Below, one piece after another: positions 16-62,793 of a stretch of 64,000 nucleotides of DNA. Both the position numbers and the translations under genes were made by a program. The notes beneath the pieces were generated by a model, which saw only the letters and a program-made list of their open reading frames with translations, made no database searches and was not told the DNA's origin. The stretch lies in the IMG/VR virus record IMGVR_UViG_3300027759_004177, positions 62,001 through 126,000 of that record; one strand, 5' to 3'. Numbering within the stretch: position 1 is the stretch's first letter; each line of letters opens with the position of its first letter.

Positions 16-390
16 TTAGTTTGGGAGATCAAAATAGCGACGAGTTGTCAACAACCATCCAATTTGGTTAAAGTCCGACTCTACTTCTTCTGTCACATAG
101 CTTTCTTCAACAAAGCCGGTAAAGTCTGTGCCTTGAAATCCGGTGCCTGAGCAGTACCAATCTATGTAACTGTCGTCTTCTCGGATGTCAGCTACAATGC
201 TGGCCGCATAACGCCAGGTGCAGTCCCAATGTATATTTTTAAGTATACCCCAGACATCTTCAGGAACATATTCATTGTTGCAAAGTGCGGCATATAAATT
301 TTGGGCATAGATTTCTTGCTGTCGTACTTTGGATATGATCCAATCTGTACTACGGATATCACGCTCAAGATTAAAAACTCTGCGACCCAT
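16..390 (-). CDS. conserved phage hypothetical protein (paralog of 2407..2811)
   Basis: YAQNLYAALCN...WR.A..IVA...YIDWYCSG shared with 2407..2811; TAAATA 4 nt upstream of ATG. Confidence 0.8.
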   Translation of the reverse strand: MGRRVFNLERDIRSTDWIISKVRQQEIYAQNLYAALCNNEYVPEDVWGILKNIHWDCTWRYAASIVADIREDDSYIDWYCSGTGFQGTDFTGFVEESYVTEEVESDFNQIGWLLTTRRYFDLPN

Positions 391-410
391 AAAGTATTTA
401 ATTGGCTCAT

Positions 411-440
411 AAAAAAAGCACCGCGAACGGTGCTTTTTTT
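411..440. terminator. intrinsic terminator (bidirectional-looking)
   Basis: AAAAAAAGCACCG-cgaa-CGGTGCTTTTTTT. Confidence 0.85.
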
Positions 441-458
441 GACAGTTTTGTTACAGTA

Positions 459-4554: not shown

Positions 4555-5865
4555 TTATATTTTCTCTCCGGCTTCAAACCCTCTAAATCCCTTGAATCTA
4601 GGAAATCTCAACGAGTACGATCCATCTTGATTTTGCGTAACAGCGTCGGCACGTACTTCAACAATATTGCCAATGATACTGTCAGCGTTGTCCCAATAAG
4701 TAACACGATCAGCATCTGTAAGTCCGCTTCCAACATTGGTCCTAATAAGTTTACCATCATCTTCTCCTTCTACTATTATAGCACCTAACTTGCCTTGATT
4801 GCGACCAGTTCCTTCTTCAACTCCAATCACAGTCAAACTAACTTCAATATAGGGTTTTTGTTTTAACCAAGCGGTACTGCGTTTACATTCATATCCTGCG
4901 TTGGGGTCTTTGATCATAATACCTTCATATCCACCAGTGATAGCATCGGCGTTAATACGTCCAAATCTACGACGACCGCCCTGCGAATCTAAATCTACCA
5001 GTTCATGTCCCAAAATAGCCACGTTAGGCATATGGTCCGCAATAGGAGCATACCAAGCACGTAACGAATTGCTACGATCCACTTGTGGTACTGAACTGGA
5101 GCCAGCTTGGAAATCTTTTAATGTTAAAATATCAAACAGGTGTAACACCGCATCTGATGCGGCCACATCCGTTTTACGATGCACTTGACGCATTAGGTCT
5201 TGGAAACTGCTACTCATTACTTCGCCATCAAACACCATTGGCTCTCGCAATAGTCGGGCATGCTTGGCAAACTGACGCTTGATGTGCTCAAAGTTTACCA
5301 GTTCCTTGCCATTACGACTATACTGATCAACATGCCCACTTGGATAGACGATAGTAATAACACGCACTCCGTCCAGCTTAACTTCCACCAATTTTGAGCC
5401 TGACACTTTGCTTTCATGATTAGCACCATCGTGAGCAAGTTGGCAACTAAAAACAGGTACAATATATTTTCCATATTTCTTTCCTACTACAGAGTTGACG
5501 GTTTTTTCTGAGACACCACAGCGTAAATCCTTGATCAAGATTCTTCTATACCAATGATTCCATTCGGCTTCTGTTGCATTCAAACGCATGTGATTGACTG
5601 CGGTAATGGCTGCATTGCCAGTGAGCTCTCTGCGTGACAACTGTTCAGCTGTGGCCCAAAACGTTTCTGGTTTTAATCCCCGACCATCACCGGATTTTTC
5701 TTCTACCTTGCGTATTCCAAATGTGACCATTGAGTCCAACGCCCACCGAGCACCTTTAAAGAACTCGTCATTACCGGCCTCTGCTTCACGCTCAACTACA
5801 CCTTCCTTGAACAAGCGACTGTTATCGCTTTCAAGTTCTTGTACCACCTGCCAGGGTTTAAGCAT
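4555..5865 (-). CDS. ATP-dependent DNA ligase
   Basis: KLDGVR (motif I), FDGEV, EGIMIK, WLKQK, SLRFPRF. Confidence 0.95.
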   Translation of the reverse strand: MLKPWQVVQELESDNSRLFKEGVVEREAEAGNDEFFKGARWALDSMVTFGIRKVEEKSGDGRGLKPETFWATAEQLSRRELTGNAAITAVNHMRLNATEAEWNHWYRRILIKDLRCGVSEKTVNSVVGKKYGKYIVPVFSCQLAHDGANHESKVSGSKLVEVKLDGVRVITIVYPSGHVDQYSRNGKELVNFEHIKRQFAKHARLLREPMVFDGEVMSSSFQDLMRQVHRKTDVAASDAVLHLFDILTLKDFQAGSSSVPQVDRSNSLRAWYAPIADHMPNVAILGHELVDLDSQGGRRRFGRINADAITGGYEGIMIKDPNAGYECKRSTAWLKQKPYIEVSLTVIGVEEGTGRNQGKLGAIIVEGEDDGKLIRTNVGSGLTDADRVTYWDNADSIIGNIVEVRADAVTQNQDGSYSLRFPRFKGFRGFEAGEKI

Positions 5866-9871: not shown

Positions 9872-10012
9872 AGAAAGATCCTTTGATTTAGAAAATGTGT
9901 AACTAGATATAAGTTTACACTGAGCTAATAAAAAATGCAAGTGGAAAAGCAGAACTTTGGTGAAGTTTCAGCGGAACTTTGCTGTAACTAATTTTATTTA
10001 GCTTTTGGCAAT

Positions 10013-10033
10013 AAAAAAGCCCCCGGAGGGGCT
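10013..10033 (-). terminator. terminator ending tmRNA transcript
   Basis: AGCCCC-tccg-GGGGCTTTTTT on minus strand. Confidence 0.8.
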
Positions 10034-10034
10034 G

Positions 10035-10350
10035 GTGGTTTCTGTTACGAGGTATTTCCTACCCTAGGCGCTGTTAGGCGGCCAATGCGAACTGTTCGTC
10101 GTTTGCGTTTACGTTGTTTGCTTTTTACGAGTACTCCTCTCGTGTTGCCATCTCTTCTAGCTCACCATGTCGAAACTGTTTCATCCCCATCAAAAAGGCT
10201 CTTGACAATCCAGAATAGATAGTTGGCAACAACTGCTATGCCCCAGAGATAAATCCAATGCCAGTCGTTAAACATAAAAGTCCTTTTGGTGGAGATGCTG
10301 GGTTCTGCCCCCAGGTCCACAGCGCCTTCGATTTGAAGGAATTACAACAA
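10035..10350 (-). ncRNA. ssrA: two-piece (circularly permuted) tmRNA; tag (A)ANDEQFALAA
   Basis: acceptor piece ends CUGGG-GGCAGAA-CCCAG-CAUCUCC-ACCA at 10287; coding piece starts GGGGAUG at 10188 (G3:U70 pair); tag frame 10106..10074; outer ends approximate. Confidence 0.92.
10162..10275 (-). CDS. putative 37-aa membrane peptide in the tmRNA intervening segment
   Basis: AAGGA SD; MFNDWHWIYLWGIAVVANYLFWIVKSLFDGDETVSTW. Confidence 0.45.
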   Translation of the reverse strand: MFNDWHWIYLWGIAVVANYLFWIVKSLFDGDETVSTW

Positions 10351-10369
10351 TATCGTTATTATATACTTA

Positions 10370-11167
10370 TTAAGTTTCTGCGTCAACCTTGGGTTTGGTA
10401 CGCCATTTTGCCAATTCGGATTCAAACTTTTGTTCTAGATCTGCGGTGATAACGGCCTGATCAACCTGTTGTCTTAGTTCATTAGCAAACGTTTCCAATT
10501 GGCCAATGTCGCCCATGTACTTGAACGTGTCTGTGACACGTCTAGTATCGTACGCATCCATGATTATGTGATAGCGGTCCTGATTTGAATCATTGCGAAT
10601 TTGATGCCAGACATTTACCCAAACCATGTAGGCCGTACCAGGTTCCATATACAACGTTTCTCCTTCGGCTGTGAAGGTACATGCAGGATTTGTAATCAGG
10701 GGTATGTGGATACGTGCCATATATTGGTTTTCACCACAATCTCTATGCACCAGACTCTTGCTACCAGCCTTCAGACAAGTTACCCTGGCTCGACGTGGTG
10801 TCAACCCAAATGCCTCAATTTGATCGATGGTCCGAGCAATCTCACCGCAATAGCCCTGTGTGGGTTTCTTGTATTCTAACGAATGTGCAATGTTAAAATA
10901 TTTCAAGGTAGTGTAATTGTTGGCATTTTTAGGAAAGAATACTTCTTCGATAGTGGTGCCTTCTTCGTTTTGAAAAAATTCCCAACCGTCTTGCCAGGCA
11001 CCAGTTTGACTCTGCAAACTCCATCCGCCAAATCCTTTATAGGCATCGGTTTCATATTCTTCGCCTTGCACGACTTGATTGCCCAAAGTAAACACATGAT
11101 TTTTTACATCGGCTACTAACCGGTCATGATCGTATTTGATAAAATTTAATTTTTCATAGAATGACAT
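10370..11167 (-). CDS. aspartyl/asparaginyl beta-hydroxylase-like Fe/2OG oxygenase
   Basis: VHRD...RIHIPLITN...WHQIRNDS..DRYHII. Confidence 0.8.
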   Translation of the reverse strand: MSFYEKLNFIKYDHDRLVADVKNHVFTLGNQVVQGEEYETDAYKGFGGWSLQSQTGAWQDGWEFFQNEEGTTIEEVFFPKNANNYTTLKYFNIAHSLEYKKPTQGYCGEIARTIDQIEAFGLTPRRARVTCLKAGSKSLVHRDCGENQYMARIHIPLITNPACTFTAEGETLYMEPGTAYMVWVNVWHQIRNDSNQDRYHIIMDAYDTRRVTDTFKYMGDIGQLETFANELRQQVDQAVITADLEQKFESELAKWRTKPKVDAET

Positions 11168-35765: not shown

Positions 35766-36268
35766 TTATGCCCTGTTATTTGTAAAGTGTATCTTGGTGT
35801 TGGACCAATATTAGCAGCCATGTGTGGTACGTCGTAACACCATTCGGCCACAAAACCTGCTCGCCAGCCAGTGATTGGACTACCGGGTCCTTCAAAATAA
35901 TGTCCACTGGCCCAGTCTTCCATAAACACAATAGCTCTATGAATAGTATGTTCCTTGCCTTCTAAGTTAAAAACACTTACATATTTTTTATAATGATCTT
36001 GGTGTGTGGGCATTACTGTGCCACAATCCATGCGATAGTAGGCTGTACCAATATTTTTCCAGCCCATGCTTTCATACAGTTCAATAAACTTGTGATTCCA
36101 CGAAGGTTGGGGTTGACGCATATCGCATAGATGTCCAGCGATCCTGGACTCATATCCCATTGCCTGCCACCGAGTCACGCTGTCTGCATCGTTATACGGT
36201 TCATCAATATAATTCAGATGCTTGTATTCATCGTCCCAAAACTTGTCTATGTGATATGTTATTATCAT
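35762..36268 (-). CDS. putative Fe/2OG-oxygenase-like protein
   Basis: PTHQD...EDWASGH...PHMAAN.G..PR. Confidence 0.6.
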   Translation of the reverse strand: MIITYHIDKFWDDEYKHLNYIDEPYNDADSVTRWQAMGYESRIAGHLCDMRQPQPSWNHKFIELYESMGWKNIGTAYYRMDCGTVMPTHQDHYKKYVSVFNLEGKEHTIHRAIVFMEDWASGHYFEGPGSPITGWRAGFVAEWCYDVPHMAANIGPTPRYTLQITGHK

Positions 36269-37488
36269 TGTGGTCGTGTGTTTCCGTAATGTATAACACA
36301 AATTTCTTTGCTGTCTGTGGTATACTTGCGCCACGGATCAATGACAATGCTACCACTGAGTATTTCACAATACAGTGGTTGCTTGTCAGTAACACCAGCA
36401 TAACCGTAGGTTACTTGTTGGTTGTGTGCCAACAATACGCAACCTACAACACTGGCTGGTACTGTGTCTGGATCTGTTAAGGGATCAATATAATAAGGAT
36501 CAATACCCATTTGTTTTAAATAGCTACCCACTAGCAAACTATAACTGCCTTCTAGGTAAGCCACACCAGGTTTGTATGCTTTGCCGTGTATGTAAACAGG
36601 AAGTCCTGTACGGTTGTCATAAATGTAACGTGCCATGTTCTTGGCCTGGACCTCACGTGCTTTCATGATGGTATCAAAGATATCGTATCCAAGATCCAAG
36701 TTTTCTGCAAGATAACGCAAGGCTATGTTATCTCTAGGATGACATGGCCCTGCATCTCCCATTCCTGCCGTCATGTACTTGGGTCCCATGATCCGCATGG
36801 TTGAATTGGCCAGGGCATCAGTGACCACGTCCACATTGATGTTGCCTTGCTTGACAGCTACGTCTTGGATCATGTTTACCAGGCCAATCTTTGCTGAGAT
36901 GAATGTGTTGTAAAATACCTTGATACATTCAGCCTCGTCCCACGTGCCCACTACGTAACGTGGATTGTTCTCCATTAATGTATTATAGAAGTCAGTCAAT
37001 AAGCGAGCATCGCCTGTCTCGCTACCGTCTTCAGTACCAATGATAACCATCTCTGGGTTAACCATGTCCCATTCAACTGATCCCATTGCGATCAAGTATG
37101 GGTTATAAATGAAACGTGCCTTGGTAATGTGTGTCTTCAGTTCTCTACGTGTAGTGCCGGGAAGAACTGTGGAGATAAGAACTACTAACTGCTCGGGTGT
37201 TGCAAATTCATTGACTTGCCGTAATACATCATTGACAATGGTATAGTCAAAGTCTTTGTTCTTCAAATGAGTGATAGGTTGATCGCCACCGTAGATAGGA
37301 TCATGCGGAGTTTGCACAGCAATAAACACCAGTTCCTTGCCTTCTACCGCTTGTTGCAAAGTGGATGCAATAATTATTTTATCACTTTTCACTGGATAAA
37401 TATCATAACCAGTTACATTATGTTGGCTTGCCATGGTTTCAGCACAAGCCATTCCTAATTTTCCACAACCTATAAAGCCTACGTTCAT
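36265..37488 (-). CDS. UDP-glucose/GDP-mannose dehydrogenase family protein
   Basis: GCGKLG, AVQTP, STVLPGTT, AECIK..YN, GPCHPRD. Confidence 0.9.
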   Translation of the reverse strand: MNVGFIGCGKLGMACAETMASQHNVTGYDIYPVKSDKIIIASTLQQAVEGKELVFIAVQTPHDPIYGGDQPITHLKNKDFDYTIVNDVLRQVNEFATPEQLVVLISTVLPGTTRRELKTHITKARFIYNPYLIAMGSVEWDMVNPEMVIIGTEDGSETGDARLLTDFYNTLMENNPRYVVGTWDEAECIKVFYNTFISAKIGLVNMIQDVAVKQGNINVDVVTDALANSTMRIMGPKYMTAGMGDAGPCHPRDNIALRYLAENLDLGYDIFDTIMKAREVQAKNMARYIYDNRTGLPVYIHGKAYKPGVAYLEGSYSLLVGSYLKQMGIDPYYIDPLTDPDTVPASVVGCVLLAHNQQVTYGYAGVTDKQPLYCEILSGSIVIDPWRKYTTDSKEICVIHYGNTRPQ

Positions 37489-39678: not shown

Positions 39679-39703
39679 AAAAGCCCCATAAGGGGCTTTT
39701 TTT
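39679..39703. terminator. bidirectional terminator
   Basis: AAAAGCCCC-ataa-GGGGCTTTTTTT. Confidence 0.85.
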
Positions 39704-40391
39704 ATGACTTGAACAAATATCGTTTATGTAAATGTAATCTTGCCTTGTTGTATTGAATGGCAGTAATAACTAGTGCTACTGCCCACGGTACAATGGCGGC
39801 GGCCCATGGAACAAGTCCTGCCCACCAACTAGCCATCAATGGTTCTTTCATTAACATCAACATGGCAACAGCAAACAATACAAATGATCCTACAAATACT
39901 GTATCTGGCCAACGCGATAGAATCTTACTGACCATAGTAGCACCAAACAGAATGATTGGTACACTAATTAACAAGCCAGCAATAACTAGAACAAAACTTC
40001 CGTTAGCGGCTGCGGCAATACCTAATGCGTTGTCTATGCCCATAACAGCATCGGCAACTACAATAGTACCAATTGCACCCCAGAATGTATCCTTAGCGTC
40101 AATGTTGTGTTCGCCGTGATCAAATACTAACTTCCACCCAATCCATATCAATGCCGCGGCACATATGGCACGCAGGCCTGGAATCATTAGTAGGTAGGTT
40201 AATGCTGCTACTGATACAAAGCGTATAGCAATAGCACCAAAGGTTCCCCAAAAGATTGCTTTTTTGCGTAAGTGGTCTGGTAATTTGTTAGCCGCCATTC
40301 CAATAACAAGAGCGTTATCACCGGCTAATACAATGTCTATCAAAATGATAGCGAGAAATGCCCAAAGGGCTTGAAGTGTAAAGAGTTCCAT
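39702..40391 (-). CDS. TerC family membrane protein (YjbE-type)
   Basis: IDIVLAGDNALVI, IVVADAVMGIDNALGI. Confidence 0.92.
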   Translation of the reverse strand: MELFTLQALWAFLAIILIDIVLAGDNALVIGMAANKLPDHLRKKAIFWGTFGAIAIRFVSVAALTYLLMIPGLRAICAAALIWIGWKLVFDHGEHNIDAKDTFWGAIGTIVVADAVMGIDNALGIAAAANGSFVLVIAGLLISVPIILFGATMVSKILSRWPDTVFVGSFVLFAVAMLMLMKEPLMASWWAGLVPWAAAIVPWAVALVITAIQYNKARLHLHKRYLFKS

Positions 40392-42513: not shown

Positions 42514-44565
42514 TTATTTCTCATGAGCTATGAATTCCCCATTCCAGTTTGCTGGTAGGTCTTGTTGCTTCATAAAGTCGCAACGTTCAATCCATATCTT
42601 ATAGTACTTGTCCATTTGTCCACCAAAGTTGCCTGTTAACTTTTTGCACATGGCGGCCGCTTCATTGAATTTTTTCTGACGGTACAGGTCATGCATTACA
42701 TCGTGTGCTTCCTTGTCTTTGCTGTAATCTTCACCTCGAGTACGTAATACTGTATAGATTAAGTCTGCTACTGTCTTGCCTTTTGGTTGTAAGTTATCCA
42801 ACAGCAAGTAGAAGAAATCATCTTTAGTTCTGTTGTATGTTTCAGCACCGATAATGGCCAACACACCGTAAGCCTTACAACGTGCTTCTAGTCGGGCGGC
42901 TGTACTAACCATGTCACCCAAGATATCATAACTGTGTCGGTCGGTTGAACCCATCTCACCAATGAACCCAACACCTGTGTTACAGCCCCAGCCCATTGCA
43001 GCTGGCGGCAAGCCTTGTGCTTCCATTTCTTTGGTATAAGCATCTACAGCGTCTAACATTTCTAAACCTACTTTGACAATAGTTCTAGCATGATCAGGAT
43101 CGTCTATAGGCGCACCATGAATGTGCATACTTGCATCACCCACATACTTGATAACCATACCCCGGTTGTCCATGATAGGTTTTGAAATAGCATCCATGTA
43201 ACCGTTCATGTATTTGCCTAATCCGCCTACATCATCGCCATAGTGTTCGCCAATTGGTGTAAAGCCACGTAAGTCACTAAACATAACACTTACGTCTTTA
43301 CGCACACCACGTTTGATCAAGTCAGGATCTTTCTGTAACATCTCCACAACTTCTTTTGAACAGTAACCAGCAAACTGTTTCTTTATGGCTTGCTTTTGTA
43401 AGAACTCGCTTACAAACTTAACACCGTAAGCATGAAGGAGAATAACAGTGAGGCCGCCAGCAAGGGCAGTAATGTCAAATAGCCAAGCATTAGCCGTGTA
43501 AACGTACTGAGATACAGGATACAAAATACCAAGAGCGATAACACCAGTAGCAAGTCCAACATATACATACCTCGTTAAAAATAATAATACGATACCTAAA
43601 ACCACAATAGCAATGATCTCAGCACCATCGGCCCAGTCGGGTCTTGATATTGCTGGACGATCTTTGTTGGCAATAACTGTGCCTAATACTGCGGCCTGTA
43701 AATCTTGTGGTAACATTTCGCCCAGGCTTGTGGCTACAGGGTTTGCTAGACCTTGCGCCGACACACCAACAATAACGATTTCACCATCAAAGTCTCGGGG
43801 CAAGTTGGTTAGGCTATAACGCTCTGGTGTCAAGCTCCAGTCAATCCATATACGACTCAAGCTGTCTGTGGTCACAGGACCAAATGCTGGAATTCGCATT
43901 TTCTCAACACCCTGCTCATTGATTTTAACTTGGAAGGTTGAGTCGCCTGCAGCCACACGCATGACTTCCATGGCCAGGCTTGGATACAATCGACCGTTGT
44001 AAGCAACTACCAGTGGCATACGACGCACAACACCGTCAACTTCCGGAAACGTGTTAACAACACCAACTCCGGCAGCGGCCGTTTCTACACTGGGAATGTT
44101 AGCGATAAGCCCCGGATAGGTCACAAACGCATCTAAACCAAATGGTCCAATTACTGCTGATCCTGGAGCTCGTGGTTGATTTCTTGTCGTTGTTGATCCA
44201 ATGCTAGGAAGTACCGTTGGGTATTGTTTTAACGCTTGCACATACGCAGTATCTTGCCCCATACGGTCTTTATCTGGAGTAAGAATATTAAACACAACAA
44301 GACCAGCATTACGTCTGTAAAGGTCTCGAATAATGGCACCGTATGTATCACGGGAAAAAGGAAATTGCCCATATCGTTCTAATGCTTTCTCATCTATGTT
44401 TACTACACTGACCCCGATCGTTTCGGCAGGTCGGCTAGTAACAAGTGTATCGAAATAGCGTAGCCTTACGCTTTCAACAAACATAGGATCTGCAACACGC
44501 AAGCCCACAATGATTGCTAGTGTTAATAGAGCAGTCCAAGGACTGATTAAGATTTTTTTGAACAT
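42514..44565 (-). CDS. CHASE2-domain class III adenylate/guanylate cyclase
   Basis: DGVVRRMPL (CHASE2), 3 TM, FSDLRGFT, KYVGD, GDMVSTAARLE. Confidence 0.93.
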   Translation of the reverse strand: MFKKILISPWTALLTLAIIVGLRVADPMFVESVRLRYFDTLVTSRPAETIGVSVVNIDEKALERYGQFPFSRDTYGAIIRDLYRRNAGLVVFNILTPDKDRMGQDTAYVQALKQYPTVLPSIGSTTTRNQPRAPGSAVIGPFGLDAFVTYPGLIANIPSVETAAAGVGVVNTFPEVDGVVRRMPLVVAYNGRLYPSLAMEVMRVAAGDSTFQVKINEQGVEKMRIPAFGPVTTDSLSRIWIDWSLTPERYSLTNLPRDFDGEIVIVGVSAQGLANPVATSLGEMLPQDLQAAVLGTVIANKDRPAISRPDWADGAEIIAIVVLGIVLLFLTRYVYVGLATGVIALGILYPVSQYVYTANAWLFDITALAGGLTVILLHAYGVKFVSEFLQKQAIKKQFAGYCSKEVVEMLQKDPDLIKRGVRKDVSVMFSDLRGFTPIGEHYGDDVGGLGKYMNGYMDAISKPIMDNRGMVIKYVGDASMHIHGAPIDDPDHARTIVKVGLEMLDAVDAYTKEMEAQGLPPAAMGWGCNTGVGFIGEMGSTDRHSYDILGDMVSTAARLEARCKAYGVLAIIGAETYNRTKDDFFYLLLDNLQPKGKTVADLIYTVLRTRGEDYSKDKEAHDVMHDLYRQKKFNEAAAMCKKLTGNFGGQMDKYYKIWIERCDFMKQQDLPANWNGEFIAHEK

Positions 44566-44575
44566 CAAGTATTTA

Positions 44576-45571
44576 TTACTTGATCACTGCTAGATTGTCT
44601 TTGAAAATACGCCAGCATTCATCCCAGGTCCAACGTTGACTGGACTGTTTAACCACGCGACCGCTTAGTTTTAAACACTTTTCAACTGCTACCGCTAGGT
44701 CGTTGTCCATATAGCCGTTTATGCCATTTTCAATGATGTCTACGGGACCTTGTACAGGAAAGGCTGCTACAGGAGTACCTTGTGCCATGGCTTCAATCAT
44801 CACTAGACCAAAGGTGTCTGCTCGGCTGGGAAACACAAACACATCAGCTTGATTGTAATAATCAACCAGCTCCTGTCCTTGTTTGTAGCCCACAAACTTA
44901 GCAGAAGGTAGCAACCGACGTGCTTCAGACATGTACGGTCCGTCGCCTACTATAACTAGTGTGTACGCATCTTGTAAAGGAATTAAATCTATCAGACCTT
45001 TTTCAGCACTGACCCGACCCACATTGAGAACCATTGGCTTAGAACGATCATCACACCATTCCGCTGTGGGCTTGATATCTCTGCGTACACCCCGAGTCCA
45101 GATAACCATGCGTCCAAATCCGTGTGATTTTAAATCCGCTTCTATGGTCTTTGTTGTGACCAGCACACGATGACTGTTTTTGTGGAACCAACGCAAATAC
45201 CAGTAAGTTAAACTTTTAGGCACATGATACATTGTTTTTAAGAACTTGGGAAAGTCTGTGTGATAGCTGGTATTGTAAGGAATACTGTTACGTTCACACC
45301 ACCAACGAGCAAAAAAGCCTACAGGCCCTTCTGTAGCGATGTGTATATAATCTGGCTGTATCGCTTTAATTTTCTTACTGATACCGTGCGGCCAGCACAA
45401 GCGAACTTCAGGATAACCAGGGCAAGCAAAATTAGGGAACTGCCCGGGATCAAGATAAACAACACTATACCCGTCACGCCTAGCATGATCTTCCAAGTTT
45501 TTGAAAGTTGTGACCACGCCGTTGATTTGATCTGGGACATTGTCTGTTATGATCAAGATTGTTTTTGACAT
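44576..45571 (-). CDS. GT4 glycosyltransferase (Agt-like DAG glycosyltransferase)
   Basis: QINGVV, HIATEGP.G, SYHT.FP, VGRVSAEK, DTFGLVMIEAMA.GTPV. Confidence 0.85.
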   Translation of the reverse strand: MSKTILIITDNVPDQINGVVTTFKNLEDHARRDGYSVVYLDPGQFPNFACPGYPEVRLCWPHGISKKIKAIQPDYIHIATEGPVGFFARWWCERNSIPYNTSYHTDFPKFLKTMYHVPKSLTYWYLRWFHKNSHRVLVTTKTIEADLKSHGFGRMVIWTRGVRRDIKPTAEWCDDRSKPMVLNVGRVSAEKGLIDLIPLQDAYTLVIVGDGPYMSEARRLLPSAKFVGYKQGQELVDYYNQADVFVFPSRADTFGLVMIEAMAQGTPVAAFPVQGPVDIIENGINGYMDNDLAVAVEKCLKLSGRVVKQSSQRWTWDECWRIFKDNLAVIK

Positions 45572-45726
45572 CGTGTACTTATTTTAAAATTATCAAATTT
45601 AAGCCAATATTGTACGGTGCTTTGAGCTCGCAAACATTCGGATTCGGTAGCAAATTCGATCGTTATTCGTCCTGGTATGTCTTGCGGATTATTCGTGTGA
45701 ACTGCCAGTAGTATCAGTATCCACAT
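45553..45726 (-). CDS. 57-aa secreted hypothetical protein
   Basis: MWILILLAV...EF....EC...C pattern. Confidence 0.5.
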   Translation of the reverse strand: MWILILLAVHTNNPQDIPGRITIEFATESECLRAQSTVQYWLKFDNFKISTRCQKQS

Positions 45727-46480
45727 TGTCATGTGCCTTTGTCCAAGTTACTATTTCCCACCTACCCGAGTGATGCTCAACCAGAGCAGTCATTGATTCG
45801 ACCCAGTCGCCATCATTCATATACACAATGCCATCTATCATCTTTATTTCTGCGTGATGTATGTGTCCACAGATCACACCATCAAAGCCACGTTTCTTAC
45901 AATATGTAGCTAGATTGGTTTCAAACTGAAACATAAAGTCTGCGGCTTTTTTGACACGGTGTTTGAGATACTTGCTTAAACTCCAGTAGCCAAATCCCAA
46001 CTTGTGTCTGATCCAATTAAATCTGCTGTTCCAATCTAATACCAGGTCGTACAGTTTATCGCCCAGGAAACTCAGCCAAGGGGCCAAACGTGTGATTCCA
46101 TCAAACAGGTCTCCGTGGGTGACCAAATATGTTTTGCCATCCGCCCCAATGTGTTCTGTTTGATTTGTTATTTCAACACGTCCAAATCCCATGCCATAAG
46201 GTATGAGTGGTCTCAGAAACTCGTCGTGGTTGCCGGCCACATAGATCACACGTGTGCCACGTTTGGCGTGTCCTAGGATTCTTCTGATTGCATTGGTGTG
46301 GCTTTGTTTCCATCGCCACTTGTTTTGTTGAATCTTCCAGGCGTCAATGATGTCGCCCACTAGATAAAGTGTTTCACAGGTGTTGTGTTTGAGAAAGTTG
46401 TTGAGTTGTTCGGCTTTGCAATCTCTGGTGCCAAAGTGTATGTCACTAATAAAAATTGAGCGATAAGTTTTGGCTGTCAT
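45689..46480 (-). CDS. LpxH-like metallophosphoesterase (UDP-2,3-diacylglucosamine hydrolase family; PlcP-like)
   Basis: YRSIFISDIH.G, LVGDIID, GNHDEFLR, HGDLFD, CGHIH, N.GDWVES. Confidence 0.88.
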   Translation of the reverse strand: MTAKTYRSIFISDIHFGTRDCKAEQLNNFLKHNTCETLYLVGDIIDAWKIQQNKWRWKQSHTNAIRRILGHAKRGTRVIYVAGNHDEFLRPLIPYGMGFGRVEITNQTEHIGADGKTYLVTHGDLFDGITRLAPWLSFLGDKLYDLVLDWNSRFNWIRHKLGFGYWSLSKYLKHRVKKAADFMFQFETNLATYCKKRGFDGVICGHIHHAEIKMIDGIVYMNDGDWVESMTALVEHHSGRWEIVTWTKAHDNVDTDTTGSSHE

Positions 46481-46502
46481 AACCATATTTATCGCTCAAT
46501 GT

Positions 46503-46531
46503 GTTGCAAAGATATTACAGAATTATTACTG
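46503..46531 (-). promoter_or_regulatory. Pho-box-like direct repeats
   Basis: CAGTAAT-aatt-CTGTAAT-atct-TTGCAAC at 11-bp period. Confidence 0.45.
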
Positions 46532-46603
46532 GTTACGGGTTCCAGTGACACCCCATCTTTGTGTCCGCTAAGATTATTTAAGTCTTAGAATATTACGGTT
46601 GTG

Positions 46604-48637
46604 TTAAAAACTAAAACGAGCCTCTATCATAGCACTTTGTACTATGTAATCATATTGTTTGCCATAACCATAACGTAGGCGCACAACACTCTTTGGATCA
46701 ATTGCATATCCAACACTGGCGTAGGCTGTGTTAAAGTTTTGACTGTTGTAAGCATACTCACCTGTTACACGCCAGTCTGTAGCAACCGTGGCGTCATAAC
46801 GTACACCAATGTCTGTGCTGGTCTTGTTTGTGTTGACTGCGTCATATGTCATAGCAGTTAAACTACTACCAGATTCTGCGACCCCGTTGCGACGATTGGT
46901 TTCGTTACGCACACCAACAAAGGGACGTATGTCATTCCACTCTGGTGTGTAAACACGAGCAGTTGCCCACAAGTCTTGACCTTTGGTTGAACTTGTATTT
47001 GCCATGCCCAGTTCAGGTAAACTGTGATTGGTATCAAATGTGTTGGCAGCATAACCAATGTCGTTTTTAAAGATCCAGTCATTGACTGTGTAAGCACTAT
47101 AAATGCCTACGTGGTCTTTGTTTAAACTACCACCTGCATTTGTGCCTGCGGCACCATTTAGGTTAGCCTGACCACGATTGTATTGACCGCCAATGATCCA
47201 GTTTGGAGCAACTTGCCAGTCGTAACCCAGGCCGTATGTCATGCTCTTGTACGAGTAACCACCCACAGAGTTTGATTGGCCGGCGCTGCCTGTCACATAA
47301 AAGGTGTTGCGTTCTGATACATTGAAGTCACCACCCAGCACACGATTGCGATCTAACACATTGCTGTCTAACATGTAGTTCATTGCCTGATTGACATTGC
47401 TCAACTGACTGTATTGATCCACGCGAGTTGAATAGTCATTGGTTTGAATTGCCTGACTGATTTCATTGCCCGATGCACTATTAGAACTGACTGAGTCGGT
47501 TGTGCTCACGGTAACTACAGGAGTTCCATTTGTCACTGTTTGAGTGCCATCGCTGTAAGTTGTGGTAGTCACAGGAGTTGTGGTTGTTGTGACAGTCACA
47601 GGAGTTGTGGTTGTTTGTGTAACTGTAAATGGTGTTGTTACAGTGGTTGTTTTTGTTTGTGTAACTGTCAATGTCTTGGCAGTTTGAGCACCTCTTGCGT
47701 TGTCAATGGCCAAGGCCGCTGCCGCTGTACCGTAAGCAATACTGTTGGTAACTGCGGCGGTCCCGGTTGTGGTTGTTGTGGTAACCGAGTCGACTGTTGT
47801 TGTGCCGGTCACTGTTGGGGCCGAAGGTGGAGGAGTTGGATCTACTGAGGGTGCAACACTACCTGGGTTAGGTGCCACAGCACCAAATGTCTCGCCATTT
47901 TTTGTTACTGTGCCGATTGCATCATTGACCTGTAGCACCGGACTCAGTGCAGTATCACCCTGATTGAATACACCAAAGCCCACTTTGTATGTGCCTGCTG
48001 TTAAAATGTCAAACTGTGCCAACTGCCAACCTGTTGAGCCATAACTGCCAGTTGAGTAGTTGCCTGTGTTGGGGTTGGTAGCACCCAGTAGGGCGTACTG
48101 TCCCAGTACGTTATTGACCTTACCGAATGTGTCGGCTGATCCTGTGTTGACCAAAGTGGCAATACTGCCATCGTTAAACGGCACATAGTCTGTGCTGGTA
48201 TATACCCAGGCCATTTTAAATGTGGCTGGTGCTGTGAATGTGAAATCTTTACTGATCCAAGCAGAACTGGTGATGCCGCCGCCCTGTGACGCTACCAAAG
48301 AATTTAAACTACTAATACTTGAACTGCTCAAACCCAATGCGGTAGTCATTGCAGAATAGTTTTGTTGGCCGCCCGGTTGCATGCCAACCATGTAACTGCC
48401 TGTGTATGGATTGATATTCCATGTGTTAGGACCACAGCAACTAATAGTTTGTGTTCCACTGGTAGTGCTCACACCAATACCGCTTTGCATGTATGGGCCT
48501 GTTTGTGTGCCTGTTCCGCCACCTGCGGTCCAACCGTTGAGGTTGCCGGTGCCAAAACTGTAATCTTGTGTTTGTGCCTGTGCTGAAAAAGCCAGGCATG
48601 CTGCAAAAGCCGCTAGGGCTGTTGTGAAAAACTTCAT
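46604..48637 (-). CDS. autotransporter-like outer membrane protein
   Basis: signal peptide, beta-rich passenger, Pro/Thr-rich stalk, C-terminal barrel ending ARFSF. Confidence 0.75.
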   Translation of the reverse strand: MKFFTTALAAFAACLAFSAQAQTQDYSFGTGNLNGWTAGGGTGTQTGPYMQSGIGVSTTSGTQTISCCGPNTWNINPYTGSYMVGMQPGGQQNYSAMTTALGLSSSSISSLNSLVASQGGGITSSAWISKDFTFTAPATFKMAWVYTSTDYVPFNDGSIATLVNTGSADTFGKVNNVLGQYALLGATNPNTGNYSTGSYGSTGWQLAQFDILTAGTYKVGFGVFNQGDTALSPVLQVNDAIGTVTKNGETFGAVAPNPGSVAPSVDPTPPPSAPTVTGTTTVDSVTTTTTTGTAAVTNSIAYGTAAAALAIDNARGAQTAKTLTVTQTKTTTVTTPFTVTQTTTTPVTVTTTTTPVTTTTYSDGTQTVTNGTPVVTVSTTDSVSSNSASGNEISQAIQTNDYSTRVDQYSQLSNVNQAMNYMLDSNVLDRNRVLGGDFNVSERNTFYVTGSAGQSNSVGGYSYKSMTYGLGYDWQVAPNWIIGGQYNRGQANLNGAAGTNAGGSLNKDHVGIYSAYTVNDWIFKNDIGYAANTFDTNHSLPELGMANTSSTKGQDLWATARVYTPEWNDIRPFVGVRNETNRRNGVAESGSSLTAMTYDAVNTNKTSTDIGVRYDATVATDWRVTGEYAYNSQNFNTAYASVGYAIDPKSVVRLRYGYGKQYDYIVQSAMIEARFSF

Positions 48638-61065: not shown

Positions 61066-62793
61066 TTAAGTAATCTCTTGCCAACCAATTTGTGCCAAGA
61101 CATCTGCGTTGTTTGATGTTGCTGCCATGGCCAGTGTGATTATATCGCTAACTCCTGCCAGTGTTCTACCTAATTGAAAGGCAAACGCATCTGCCCCCAG
61201 TTCGGAAAGTTCTCTACTGCTGACATAGCCGGCCTGTAGTTCCGTGCCGCCTGATAAGGCAGTTGCGGCTGTGTCATATTCTACTGTTCCCGAACTACTG
61301 GTTCCTGCCCAGTTGGCATTAGTTAGGGTAGGATTTAATACCAATTTCCAACGATAGTAGTTTACAGTAGGACTTAGTACATCCACTTGTCTGGGCAACA
61401 CAATAGCATCTAATCTTGTGCTGTCCAATCTGATACTAACTACGGGATAGTATGTTCCTGCCGAAGATAGTCTCAATACCGAAGTACCACGCCCGGCTGT
61501 TTCACTGTAAGTAAAAGCATTGTATCCACCTTCACTGATAACTGTGGAACAAATTTGTCGCATCATACTGTCACCACTGGTACCTGCTGTGTTTGTTATT
61601 TCATAACGCACTGGCAATATTGCAGTGGTCATATATGTAGTGGTATTGCCTGCTACGTTGGCATGATGGAACGTATGGCACAGCACATAGGCACCGTTGA
61701 CGACAAAACCACAACGAACAGAGCCCACGCCTAACCATTCTATATCTGTCCAAAATATCTGTGTTCTATCTACATTTAATGCGGCAAATGGATTGTCCCA
61801 AGCATCTTGTCTTATCCTATCCTCAACCAACGCACCACTACTGTAACTTCTTATTACCAAATAGTTATAGGCACCATCGTTTTCAAAGTAGATACCATTG
61901 TTGGTAGTAAAATACCCCACACGTTGACGTAGATTGGTCTTGGGTGTGTTCATACAGAAAGTTGTTAGCACCAACAGACTTTTACCTGGTTGATAAGGAA
62001 ATACTCTTTTTGTTTCTCTTATGACACTAGATCCACTGATGGCAGTTACGTTCAATAGGTATGTGGAACTATCAGCATCATATACTACTGTTCCACCAGT
62101 GGCATTGACATTACTAAAATCACTGTGATCGTAGTATCTTGCTTTGCTGTCGAACAATGTGTATGGTTCGCTGACACGCAGTCTACCAAACGCATCAGTT
62201 GATCCTGAGCCTAGGGTAAATGTACTGGTTCCTGTTAATGTAGCAGTTACATTGCCATCTACTGTAATACTGCCACCGCCATCAGCAATGTTTACATTAC
62301 CGGTAACACCGGGCATTTGTGTAATGCTCACATTGCCAGTGATACCTGGCAGTTGACCAATGTTTACATTACCACTCACTCCTACGGTGCCTGTGATGGC
62401 TGGTAGTGTTGTTATAGCAACTATGTTGCCCAAGATTGCAACGTTACCTGTGACGCTAACATTGCCTGTGATTGAGGGCAAGGTTGTTATACCAGTGATG
62501 TTGCCCGTAACAGTAACATTAGCGTTGCCGGTTGTTACCCAAGGTGTTGTACCTTGATTGACAACCAACACATTGCCAACAAGATACACCGGTATACGTT
62601 GTGCTTCGGTGTTGTTGACTCTAACAGCATCAAGTACATTGACATTACCACTTACTGTGATGTTGTCAGACCCAAGGGTCACACGTAGGTGTGGTTCACC
62701 TGATGTATCATAGGTTAATGCTTTGTGAACATTTAATAGGTTAGGTTCATTGGGATGAACGTAGTTGGTGCTGTTAGGATTCTGTACGCCCAT
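61066..62793 (-). CDS. probable virion structural/fibre protein
   Basis: TGNV..T..P repeats, DAFGRLRVS, lectin-like beta C-terminus. Confidence 0.6.
   Translation of the reverse strand: MGVQNPNSTNYVHPNEPNLLNVHKALTYDTSGEPHLRVTLGSDNITVSGNVNVLDAVRVNNTEAQRIPVYLVGNVLVVNQGTTPWVTTGNANVTVTGNITGITTLPSITGNVSVTGNVAILGNIVAITTLPAITGTVGVSGNVNIGQLPGITGNVSITQMPGVTGNVNIADGGGSITVDGNVTATLTGTSTFTLGSGSTDAFGRLRVSEPYTLFDSKARYYDHSDFSNVNATGGTVVYDADSSTYLLNVTAISGSSVIRETKRVFPYQPGKSLLVLTTFCMNTPKTNLRQRVGYFTTNNGIYFENDGAYNYLVIRSYSSGALVEDRIRQDAWDNPFAALNVDRTQIFWTDIEWLGVGSVRCGFVVNGAYVLCHTFHHANVAGNTTTYMTTAILPVRYEITNTAGTSGDSMMRQICSTVISEGGYNAFTYSETAGRGTSVLRLSSAGTYYPVVSIRLDSTRLDAIVLPRQVDVLSPTVNYYRWKLVLNPTLTNANWAGTSSSGTVEYDTAATALSGGTELQAGYVSSRELSELGADAFAFQLGRTLAGVSDIITLAMAATSNNADVLAQIGWQEIT

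Follow-up and report, generated by a model that had tools for sequence, protein, structure and literature searches.

We found that a 357-kb freshwater jumbo phage carries a PlcP-like metallophosphoesterase gene followed by an Agt/GTcp-like GT4 glycosyltransferase gene, downstream of Pho-box-like direct repeats, suggesting that the phage can probably replace the phospholipids of the infected cell with sugar lipids and free phosphorus when phosphate is scarce. The locus lies within a 64,000-nt window (positions 62,001 to 126,000 of IMG/VR record IMGVR_UViG_3300027759_004177), all on the minus strand, and comprises the metallophosphoesterase (45689-46486), a conserved 59-aa ORF (45553-45732) and a 331-aa GT4 enzyme (44576-45571), the predicted diacylglycerol glycosyltransferase. 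A first-pass annotation had proposed a lipid-remodelling pair of the PlcP-Agt type, with three 7-mers at 11-bp spacing upstream and a UDP-glucose dehydrogenase-family gene at 36265, and each testable element of this proposal was supported, although it missed the 59-aa ORF and a second repeat pair, and both the start codon of the esterase and the status of the third 7-mer required revision. No paper that we found describes a phage plcP, and virome surveys list such genes as lpxH.

The phage esterase is separated from LpxH

The esterase is a calcineurin-type metallophosphoesterase (Pfam PF00149, E=3.7e-11) of 265 aa from 46486, but by conservation the real start is most likely the second ATG at 46480, which gives 263 aa. 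The metal-binding residues D13, H15, G42-D43, G83-N84-H85-D86, H122, G205-H206 and H208 are invariant in a 44-sequence alignment. More than 597 IMG/VR contigs encode a relative, the 80 best being 80-100% identical. Source annotations call all close relatives LpxH, a protein atlas returned only generic "LpxH family" names, and virome surveys list lpxH under LPS biosynthesis, which would make the esterase a UDP-2,3-diacylglucosamine diphosphatase for lipid A and LPS synthesis and the GT4 an LPS or polysaccharide glycosyltransferase. However, although its best NCBIfam hit is LpxH, the esterase scored only 43.6 and 32.3 bits against the equivalog models NF003743 and TIGR01854, whose cut-offs are 134 and 190 bits, and 28.5 bits in a scan of the genome, whereas real LpxH genes scored 177-345 bits on TIGR01854, and LpxH in the PDB was matched only at E=2e-3.

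To determine if the esterase groups with LpxH, we built a phylogenetic tree, in which 12 LpxH were split from 70 homologs by a branch of length 4.67 with SH-aLRT support of 100, and the phage clade (support 98) was nested among alphaproteobacterial homologs of the plcP-agt operon type; locus L128 was left out of the tree. The cellular relatives are mostly Alphaproteobacteria (144 of 401 sampled genomes), and similarity to alphaproteobacterial operon-linked homologs reached E values of 1e-77 to 1e-94. In addition, one vibrio genome holds both a true LpxH (22% identity) and a homolog of the phage gene (41%). The predicted fold (pLDDT 85) shares with LpxH a calcineurin-like core with a helical lid inserted at the same place, and the closest solved and Swiss-Prot folds are LpxH (TM 0.47-0.59), albeit with only 15-21% identity and an rmsd of 10-13 Å; as no PlcP structure turned up in PDB searches, the fold cannot separate the two readings. 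Taking these observations together with the gene linkage and promoter evidence below, the LpxH reading is largely refuted and very unlikely, while membership in the PlcP family rests on operon-linked homologs and published identity ranges rather than on an experimentally characterised PlcP placed in the tree.

The downstream GT4 enzyme carries Agt/GTcp signature motifs

The GT4 enzyme (PF00534, 3.9e-23; PF13439, 1.8e-15) is 36-42% identical over about 330 aa, its full length, to GT4 genes directly downstream of the bacterial esterase homologs, including one from a Kordiimonas sp., whereas solved GT4 structures matched only its C-terminal motif region with E no better than 1.4e-8. The SAR11 enzyme GTcp, whose residues were tested by mutagenesis, has the UDP-sugar motifs GRVAxEKN and FPSxTDTFG, the His104-Asp256 dyad and essential residues G16, G82, G85, R190, K195, T257, F258, G259, E264, T162, R163 and W320 (PMC8231724). 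The phage enzyme has GRVSAEKG and FPSRADTFG, and its G18, G82, G85, R160, R186, K191, T253, F254, G255, E260 and W316 are invariant in 34 sequences, while H104 is present in 33 of the 34 (all 15 viral), T159 is invariant in the viral sequences and T/S/N in the bacterial ones, and D252 is D or E; the residues proposed to bind diacylglycerol are retained. The identities to operon-linked homologs of 50-58% for the esterase and 36-42% for the GT4 fall in the range between characterised members, 51% and 43%, respectively (PMC9239053).

The GT4 homolog lies next to the esterase in 24 of 34 bacterial loci, directly downstream in 22, which is the plcP-agt arrangement described previously (PMC4796936). 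In 76 of 80 related viral loci, the esterase is followed by the GT4 (51) or by a GT2/GT21-like transferase (25), with 1 locus having none and 3 being too short to tell. The conserved 59-aa ORF (45553..45732) is wedged between the two enzymes, overlapping the 3′ end of the esterase gene by 44 nt and the 5′ end of the GT4 gene by 19 nt, and encodes a protein with a hydrophobic N-terminus and two conserved cysteines, but without a Pfam or NCBIfam match. Homologs at 40-98% identity sit in the same position in 38 of the 80 related loci and in one bacterial locus, L002.

Compared with the bacterial lipid renovation pathway (Sinorhizobium SMc00171; SAR11 HTCC7211 PlcP and GTcp; Phaeobacter MED193; P. 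aeruginosa; Methylosinus OB3b), the phage locus has a similar order, with the metallophosphoesterase directly upstream of the GT4 and direct-repeat Pho boxes upstream, as well as the metal-binding motifs and the GT4 motifs GRVxxEKx and FPSxxDTFG with the His/Asp dyad. By contrast, it is encoded by a phage and by hundreds of related viral contigs, contains the additional 59-aa ORF, has a start that looks leaderless and a covarying hairpin across the promoter and start codon, uses the repeat hexamer TGTAAC/T rather than TGTCAT, and has the GT4 replaced by a GT2/GT21-like enzyme in about a third of relatives.

Pho-box-like repeats precede the esterase gene

The three 7-mers, CAGTAAT (46531..46525), CTGTAAT (46520..46514) and TTGCAAC (46509..46503), are spaced by exactly 11 bp and form a proximal site, P2, although the third is weakly conserved among relatives and CAGTAAT and TTGCAAC deviate from the consensus. 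A second, better-scoring site, P1 (46590..46610), which overlaps the stop codon of the upstream autotransporter gene, consists of TTTAAC (46608..46603), 5 nt and CGTAAT (46597..46592), and is followed after 11 nt by the −10-like element TAAATA (46580..46575), a geometry also seen before phage pstS genes. To assess whether these sites exceed chance, a weight matrix trained on 37 relatives, leaving out the window's own type, was scanned over both strands of the 356,865-bp genome, in which P1 ranked 1st (23.8 bits) and P2 3rd (15.6 bits), with maxima of 20 shuffles at 14.2-22.4 bits. The 14 hits above 12 bits equalled the number in shuffles (4-15), which rejects a general phage promoter motif.

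Homologous sites were found in 40 of 69 distinct relatives' upstream regions, with an information content of 1.1-2.0 bits in the two hexamers and 0-0.9 bits in the spacer. A TAAATA −10-like element, located at 46491..46486 for P2, is present in all 40 motif-bearing relatives, and its distance from the second repeat is quantised at 11 or 21/22 nt in 38 of the 40 relatives' sites, the other 2 being the window-type distal site. The remaining 29 of 69 regions lack the promoter, and there the gene abuts an upstream gene, indicating that Pho control is not universal.

We next scanned IMG/VR contigs for the exact repeat-plus-TAAAT pattern without regard to the genes. At the 11-nt spacer, the hits comprised 16 PstS genes (12 by tblastn, 2 second-family, 2 cut off; three checked scored 392-422 bits against a cut-off of 339), 11 esterase genes and 7 others, and at 21/22 nt, 6 esterase genes, 1 PstS and 18 others, whereas 0 of 61 hits at all other spacers preceded either gene. 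In 401 bacterial genomes there were 3 hits, two of which precede ppk1 and a phosphate-selective porin O/P, and 0 with the reversed control. Some relatives (loci L094, L106 and L068) carry canonical TGTCAC/TGTCAT at the same place, and several bacterial homologs have GTCAC/GTCAT boxes upstream. In Pelagibacter phage Mosig, the 50% identical homolog Mosig_00120 ("putative UDP-2,3-diacylglucosamine hydrolase") is divergent from pstS, with TTTAACA-AAAA-CTTAACA and TAAATATTGATATG in the shared intergenic region and the same TAAATATTGnTATG start context, but it has no adjacent glycosyltransferase and its small downstream ORF is unrelated to the 59-aa ORF.

Alternatively, the repeats may be bound by another OmpR-family regulator or a phage factor, or be only part of a promoter shared by horizontally moving cassettes, since OmpR-family regulators all bind direct repeats spaced by 10-11 bp, the hexamer TGTAAC/T differs from the E. 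coli TGTCAT consensus, the pstS and esterase promoters could share ancestry rather than a regulator, and in-silico Pho boxes in a cyanophage have failed experimental tests (PMC10976474). However, the motif precedes four unrelated gene families with phosphate functions, namely PstS of two families, the esterase, ppk1 and porin O/P, in both phages and bacteria, the flanks differ while the spacing is strictly phased, canonical hexamers replace TGTAAT/C in some relatives, and no PhoB/OmpR-type winged-helix regulator is encoded in the phage genome, making this alternative improbable. The arrangement is reminiscent of cyanophage pstS and phoA and the Pho-box genes of S-PM2d (PMC10976474), in which a host-derived phosphate-stress gene is preceded by a Pho box without a phage-encoded regulator, but here the cargo is a membrane-lipid pathway rather than phosphate uptake or scavenging from the medium, and the hosts are probably Proteobacteria, not cyanobacteria. 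The beta-type tmRNA was not found above cut-off in 151 sampled genomes.

A conserved hairpin spans the promoter and start codon

The conserved ATG at 46480 begins 5 nt after the −10-like element of P2, and in relatives the ATG follows at 4-5 nt with no Shine-Dalgarno sequence, so the transcript is predicted to be leaderless. By contrast, phage pstS genes have a 25-50 nt leader with GGAG after the same element. Notably, a hairpin spans this region (46455..46500), with the 5′ arm ATTGAGCGATAA (46500..46489) overlapping the −10 region, the 3′ arm TTATCGCTCAAT (46466..46455) encoding residues 5-9 counted from ATG 46480, and a 22-nt loop holding the predicted start site and the ATG; TTTTTATT follows. 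The predicted RNA fold has an energy of −19.3 kcal/mol (z = −4.17), and across 27 distinct relatives 98.5% of cells pair, compared with 83.5% when shuffled and 25-53% in slid registers, with compensatory changes in 5 of 12 pairs. Other relatives have unrelated arm sequences with the same topology, and as the arms covary and differ completely between relatives, a protein operator was rejected. A generic promoter and terminator scan flagged neither the Pho promoter nor the hairpin, whose loop exceeds 8 nt. Public RNA runs gave only one 212-nt metatranscriptome contig on the GT4 gene, which could be DNA carry-over and carries no 5′-end information, and none was listed for the esterase.

A model for phage-borne lipid renovation

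Taking these observations together, we consider it more likely than not that the pair is a phage-borne copy of the bacterial PlcP-Agt pathway wired to the phosphate-starvation regulator of the host. In this model, phosphorylated PhoB in a phosphate-starved host would bind the TGTAAC/TGTAAT-type repeats that take the place of a −35 box and activate a weak TAAAT −10 promoter, with transcription starting at or next to the A of the ATG at 46480 to give a leaderless mRNA for the esterase, the 59-aa protein and the GT4. The esterase would cleave membrane glycerophospholipids to diacylglycerol plus a phospho-headgroup, the GT4 would glycosylate the diacylglycerol to a phosphorus-free glycolipid so that the membrane stays intact, and host enzymes would turn the headgroups into usable phosphorus for phage nucleotide synthesis. 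As its 5′ arm lies upstream of the start site, the hairpin could form only in read-through transcripts, where we speculate it would terminate them or mask the start region, so that a potentially harmful phospholipase would be expressed only from its own Pho promoter; however, a transcript from P1 would include the hairpin, which leaves the role of P1 unclear. The phage encodes no PstS, PhoA, PhoX or PhoB-type regulator, and release of inorganic phosphate and regulation would therefore depend on the host.

The same enzymology and Pho control might instead serve a benefit other than phosphorus supply, in which glycolipid replacement, together with a nearby desaturase, remodels the envelope to block superinfection, alter predation or antibiotic susceptibility, stabilise the membrane or time lysis in starved cells. 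Lipid renovation changes predator and phage interactions in bacteria (PMC9457565, PMC9804370, PMC9938194), the island also holds a fatty-acid desaturase, a TerC protein, an autotransporter and a CHASE2 cyclase, and the phage has no phosphatase or PstS of its own. We regard this as the less likely alternative, because the promoter motif is shared specifically with phage pstS genes, whose role is phosphate acquisition, and because, by our rough estimate, one 357-kb genome holds about 0.7 million P atoms while the phospholipids of a small bacterium hold a few million, comparable to the host chromosome, making membrane phosphorus a meaningful pool.

Known phage phosphate genes act on external phosphate (pstS, phoA), whereas the present pair would tap the membrane phosphorus of the host while keeping the membrane intact. 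More tentatively, Pho-regulated membrane-lipid renovation may be a widespread phage strategy in freshwater jumbo phages and at least one pelagiphage, in which case the "lpxH/LPS biosynthesis" auxiliary gene counted in virome surveys would really be plcP, moving a gene family abundant in lake viromes to phosphorus and lipid cycling, and lipid signatures used as markers of phosphorus stress could be partly virus-driven. The gene would then sit in a previously undescribed control cassette, a Pho-box promoter firing a leaderless mRNA from inside the loop of a covarying terminator-like hairpin, with read-through transcripts silenced and the phospholipase made only on the phosphate-starvation signal of the host.

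Neighbouring genes

The gene at 36265..37488 has the N-terminal and central UDPG/GDP-mannose dehydrogenase domains, matches PHROG 9148 "UDP-glucose dehydrogenase" at 4e-96, and has UDP-glucose 6-dehydrogenases as its best PDB matches. It lies 7 kb away in a separate cluster of genes with no recognisable function, and any supply of UDP-glucuronate by it to the pair remains unproven. A CHASE2-sensor adenylate/guanylate cyclase gene (42514..44568; PF05226, 2.7e-38; PF00211, 3e-14) lies 7 nt downstream of the GT4 gene with no predicted terminator between the genes and is possibly co-transcribed, but it is not part of the core pair, being downstream of the GT4 in only 9 of 80 relatives.

Genomic context and organization of the esterase-GT4 pair

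The window corresponds to bases 62001-126000 of a 356,865-bp IMG/VR virus record rated complete, and encodes virion proteins, a DNA ligase and radical-SAM enzymes typical of phages, with a GC content of about 43%. Near-identical DNA occurs in many freshwater metagenomes. The genes of interest all lie on the minus strand, with ORF 45689..46486 encoding a calcineurin-type metallophosphoesterase and ORF 44576..45571 encoding a GT4 glycosyltransferase. Between them lies a 59-aa ORF (45553..45732) that overlaps both genes, homologs of which, at 40-98% identity, sit in the same position in 38 of 80 related viral loci and share a hydrophobic N-terminus and two invariant cysteines, indicating that this is a real gene of unknown function. 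The three 7-mers noted in the first-pass annotation are CAGTAAT, CTGTAAT and TTGCAAC, located at 46531-46503 with a spacing of exactly 11 bp. The same annotation connected the pair with the gene at 36265, which indeed belongs to the UDP-glucose/GDP-mannose dehydrogenase family; however, this gene sits in a separate cluster of genes with no recognisable function, and its link to the pair remains speculative.

The esterase is distinct from LpxH

To determine whether the esterase is an LpxH or a PlcP-like enzyme, we first compared it with profile models, and it scored only 43.6 and 32.3 bits on the two NCBIfam LpxH equivalogs, whose cut-offs are 134 and 190, whereas genuine gammaproteobacterial LpxH genes score 177-345 bits on the TIGR01854 model. 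LpxH sequences in the PDB matched only at E=2e-3. By contrast, the closest named cellular relatives are Alphaproteobacteria at 47-58% identity, and 144 of 401 sampled alphaproteobacterial genomes carry a homolog. Notably, one vibrio genome has both a true LpxH, 22% identical to the phage protein, and a homolog at 41%.

A maximum-likelihood tree of 82 sequences separated 12 LpxH, including that of E. coli K-12, from all 70 homologs by a branch of length 4.67 with SH-aLRT support of 100. The jumbo-phage sequences form one clade (support 98) nested among alphaproteobacterial genes, with the homolog from Pelagibacter phage Mosig nearby. Two short contigs binned into a Bacteroidia MAG (JBIIVF010000148.1, with the esterase, the 59-aa ORF and the GT4) and a Competibacteraceae MAG (the shorter CAIRZE010000028.1, with the esterase and the GT4) carry the phage-type cassette and group with the phage clade, suggesting that they are probably phage DNA mis-binned into the MAGs. 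All metal-binding motifs of the esterase are invariant. The AlphaFold model (pLDDT 85) has the esterase core plus a two-helix lid and most resembles LpxH (TM about 0.55, 15-21% identity), which is expected and does not discriminate between the two readings.

The esterase gene is linked to a glycosyltransferase gene in bacteria and phages

In 24 of the 34 bacterial loci, a GT4 that is 36-48% identical to the phage GT4 lies next to the esterase homolog, directly downstream in 22, which is the plcP-agt arrangement described for marine bacteria (PMC4796936). The phage GT4 contains the two UDP-sugar motifs (GRVSAEKG and FPSRADTFG), and the counterparts of the residues shown by mutagenesis to be essential in the SAR11 enzyme GTcp, including those proposed to bind diacylglycerol, are conserved across 34 phage and bacterial sequences (PMC8231724). 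Solved GT4 structures match only weakly, and only in the C-terminal motif region.

Among 80 IMG/VR loci, the esterase is followed within 2.5 kb by this GT4 (51 loci) or by a 236-aa GT2/GT21-like enzyme (25 loci), while one locus has neither and three are too short. In about a third of related phages, the GT4 is replaced at the same place by the GT2/GT21-like glycosyltransferase (for example, at 4870-5580 of the related viral locus L115). GT21 is the family of the processive diacylglycerol glycosyltransferases (PMC8231724), and the replacement parallels the bacterial plcP contexts that hold processive glycosyltransferases. The esterase itself is 80-100% identical across these loci, while the GT4 ranges from 48 to 100%. 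In addition, in freshwater metagenome run X19, the summed contig depth over the most conserved part of the esterase gene (46241-46407) is about 430, with flanking bins mostly at about 0-15, and many co-occurring phage strains appear to share this segment.

The upstream repeats resemble Pho boxes

In 40 of 69 distinct relatives' upstream regions, two hexamers (consensus TGTAAC-N5-TGTAAT) are followed by TAAAT(A), with a spacing quantised at 11 nt or 21/22 nt, and in the longer class a third, degenerate repeat fills the extra turn. Information content is high in the hexamers and low in the spacers and flanks, and three relatives carry canonical TGTCAC/TGTCAT at these positions. A weight matrix trained without the window's own type found its best hit in the whole phage genome at 46610-46590 (23.8 bits), a second site missed by the first-pass annotation, whereas the site that annotation had reported ranked third. 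The overall hit count equals that in shuffles, so this is not a general phage promoter. Between the two sites lies a 7-codon mini-ORF (ATGGGGTGTCACTGGAACCCGTAA; 46534-46557, minus strand), and an AT-rich inverted repeat, CTAAGA/TCTTAG, brackets the distal TAAATA.

To test the motif without reference to genes, we scanned 2.9 million viral contigs for TGTAAC-N5-TGTAAT-N{10,23}-TAAAT and examined the 120 loci returned. With an 11-nt spacer, 34 hits comprised 16 PstS genes, 11 esterase genes and 7 others, and three of the PstS genes that were checked score 392-422 bits on the PstS equivalog, whose cut-off is 339. With a spacer of 21/22 nt, 25 hits comprised 6 esterase genes, 1 PstS and 18 others, while with every other spacer length none of 61 hits preceded either gene. 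Many IMG/VR viral contigs carry pstS genes, of two PstS families, behind the same TGTAAC-N5-TGTAAT-N11-TAAAT promoter, which defines a Pho-box type shared across a group of phages. In 401 bacterial genomes, the 11-nt pattern occurred three times, against zero for the reversed control, and two of the three occurrences precede polyphosphate kinase and a phosphate-selective porin O/P.

Bacterial homologs of the esterase have GTCAC/GTCAT boxes upstream. In Pelagibacter phage Mosig (MT647606, 93031-94866), the homolog (50% identity), which is annotated as a UDP-2,3-diacylglucosamine hydrolase, is divergently paired with pstS, and the shared 150-bp intergenic region holds the same kind of repeats (TTTAACA-AAAA-CTTAACA) and the same TAAATATTGATATG start context as the jumbo phages. 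The phage studied here has no PhoB/OmpR-type regulator of its own. Taking these observations together, we conclude that the repeats are probably Pho boxes read by the host's PhoB, although predicted Pho boxes in a cyanophage did not all bind PhoB (PMC10976474).

A predicted leaderless start and a conserved promoter-spanning hairpin

After the TAAAT element, phage pstS genes have a 25-50 nt leader with a GGAG ribosome-binding site. By contrast, the conserved ATG of the esterase (46480) begins 4-5 nt after TAAATA and has no Shine-Dalgarno sequence, which about 35% of the phage's genes do have. If the hexamer ends at the T of TAAAT, the A of the ATG is the seventh base, which predicts a leaderless mRNA. 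About 5% of the phage's predicted genes have TAAAT within 16 nt of the start codon, against 1.4% at random positions, and several genes may therefore be leaderless. At 390-457 (minus strand), CTGTAAC-AAAA-CTGTCAA (14.6 bits on the matrix) is followed by a GC-rich terminator hairpin and then TTAAATACTTTATG at the start of ORF 16..390.

A 12-bp perfect inverted repeat pairs the region just upstream of and overlapping the -10 box (46500..46489) with that encoding residues 5-9 of the protein counted from ATG 46480 (46466..46455), and TTTTTATT follows. The RNA folds at -19.3 kcal/mol (z = -4.2). On 27 distinct relatives, 98.5% of cells pair, against 83.5% when shuffled and 25-53% in slid registers, and 5 of 12 pairs show compensatory double changes in 49 cells, a level reached by 0 of 500 shuffles. 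Other relatives have unrelated arm sequences with the same topology, with a mean repeat length of 10.1 bp against 5.3 bp when the upstream part is shuffled. As the 5′ arm lies upstream of the predicted start site, only read-through transcripts can form the hairpin, and we infer that it insulates the phospholipase gene from upstream transcription, either by termination or by masking the start region.

A putative phage-borne lipid-renovation module

The most likely reading is a phage-borne PlcP-Agt lipid-renovation module switched on by host PhoB, in which the enzymatic steps follow from established knowledge of the family (PMC4796936, PMC9239053, PMC8231724). That its purpose is phosphorus supply is an inference. 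The phage has no PstS, PhoA or PhoX, so turning phospho-headgroups into usable phosphate needs host enzymes, and by our rough arithmetic membrane phosphorus is of the same order as the phosphorus in several copies of a 357-kb genome. A rival purpose, envelope remodelling for exclusion or membrane stability, cannot be excluded. Full-text searches found no report of a phage-encoded PlcP or PlcP-Agt pair, and viral 'lpxH' appears in surveys as an LPS-biosynthesis auxiliary gene. While the pathway and Pho control of phage genes are each known, their combination in phages, its breadth, the alternative GT2 partner, the 59-aa companion gene and the promoter-spanning hairpin are new here.

The pair is flanked by a CHASE2-sensor adenylate/guanylate cyclase (42514-44568, minus strand), located 7 nt downstream of the GT4 and possibly on the same transcript, and by a 677-aa protein with an autotransporter beta-domain (46604-48637, minus strand), both of which are unusual phage cargo. 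The phage also encodes a two-piece (permuted) tmRNA of the betaproteobacterial type (10012-10400, minus strand; Rfam RF01850, 144.5 bits against a gathering score of 84; tag peptide ANDEQFALAA), which hints at a betaproteobacterial host, and in some relatives the esterase gene lies directly downstream of this tmRNA gene. In addition, a fatty-acid desaturase (PF00487; 40538-41272, plus strand) and a TerC-family membrane protein (39702-40391, minus strand) lie 3-5 kb from the pair, and in one relative (L090) a desaturase-like ORF directly follows the GT2; the island may hold further membrane-lipid functions.
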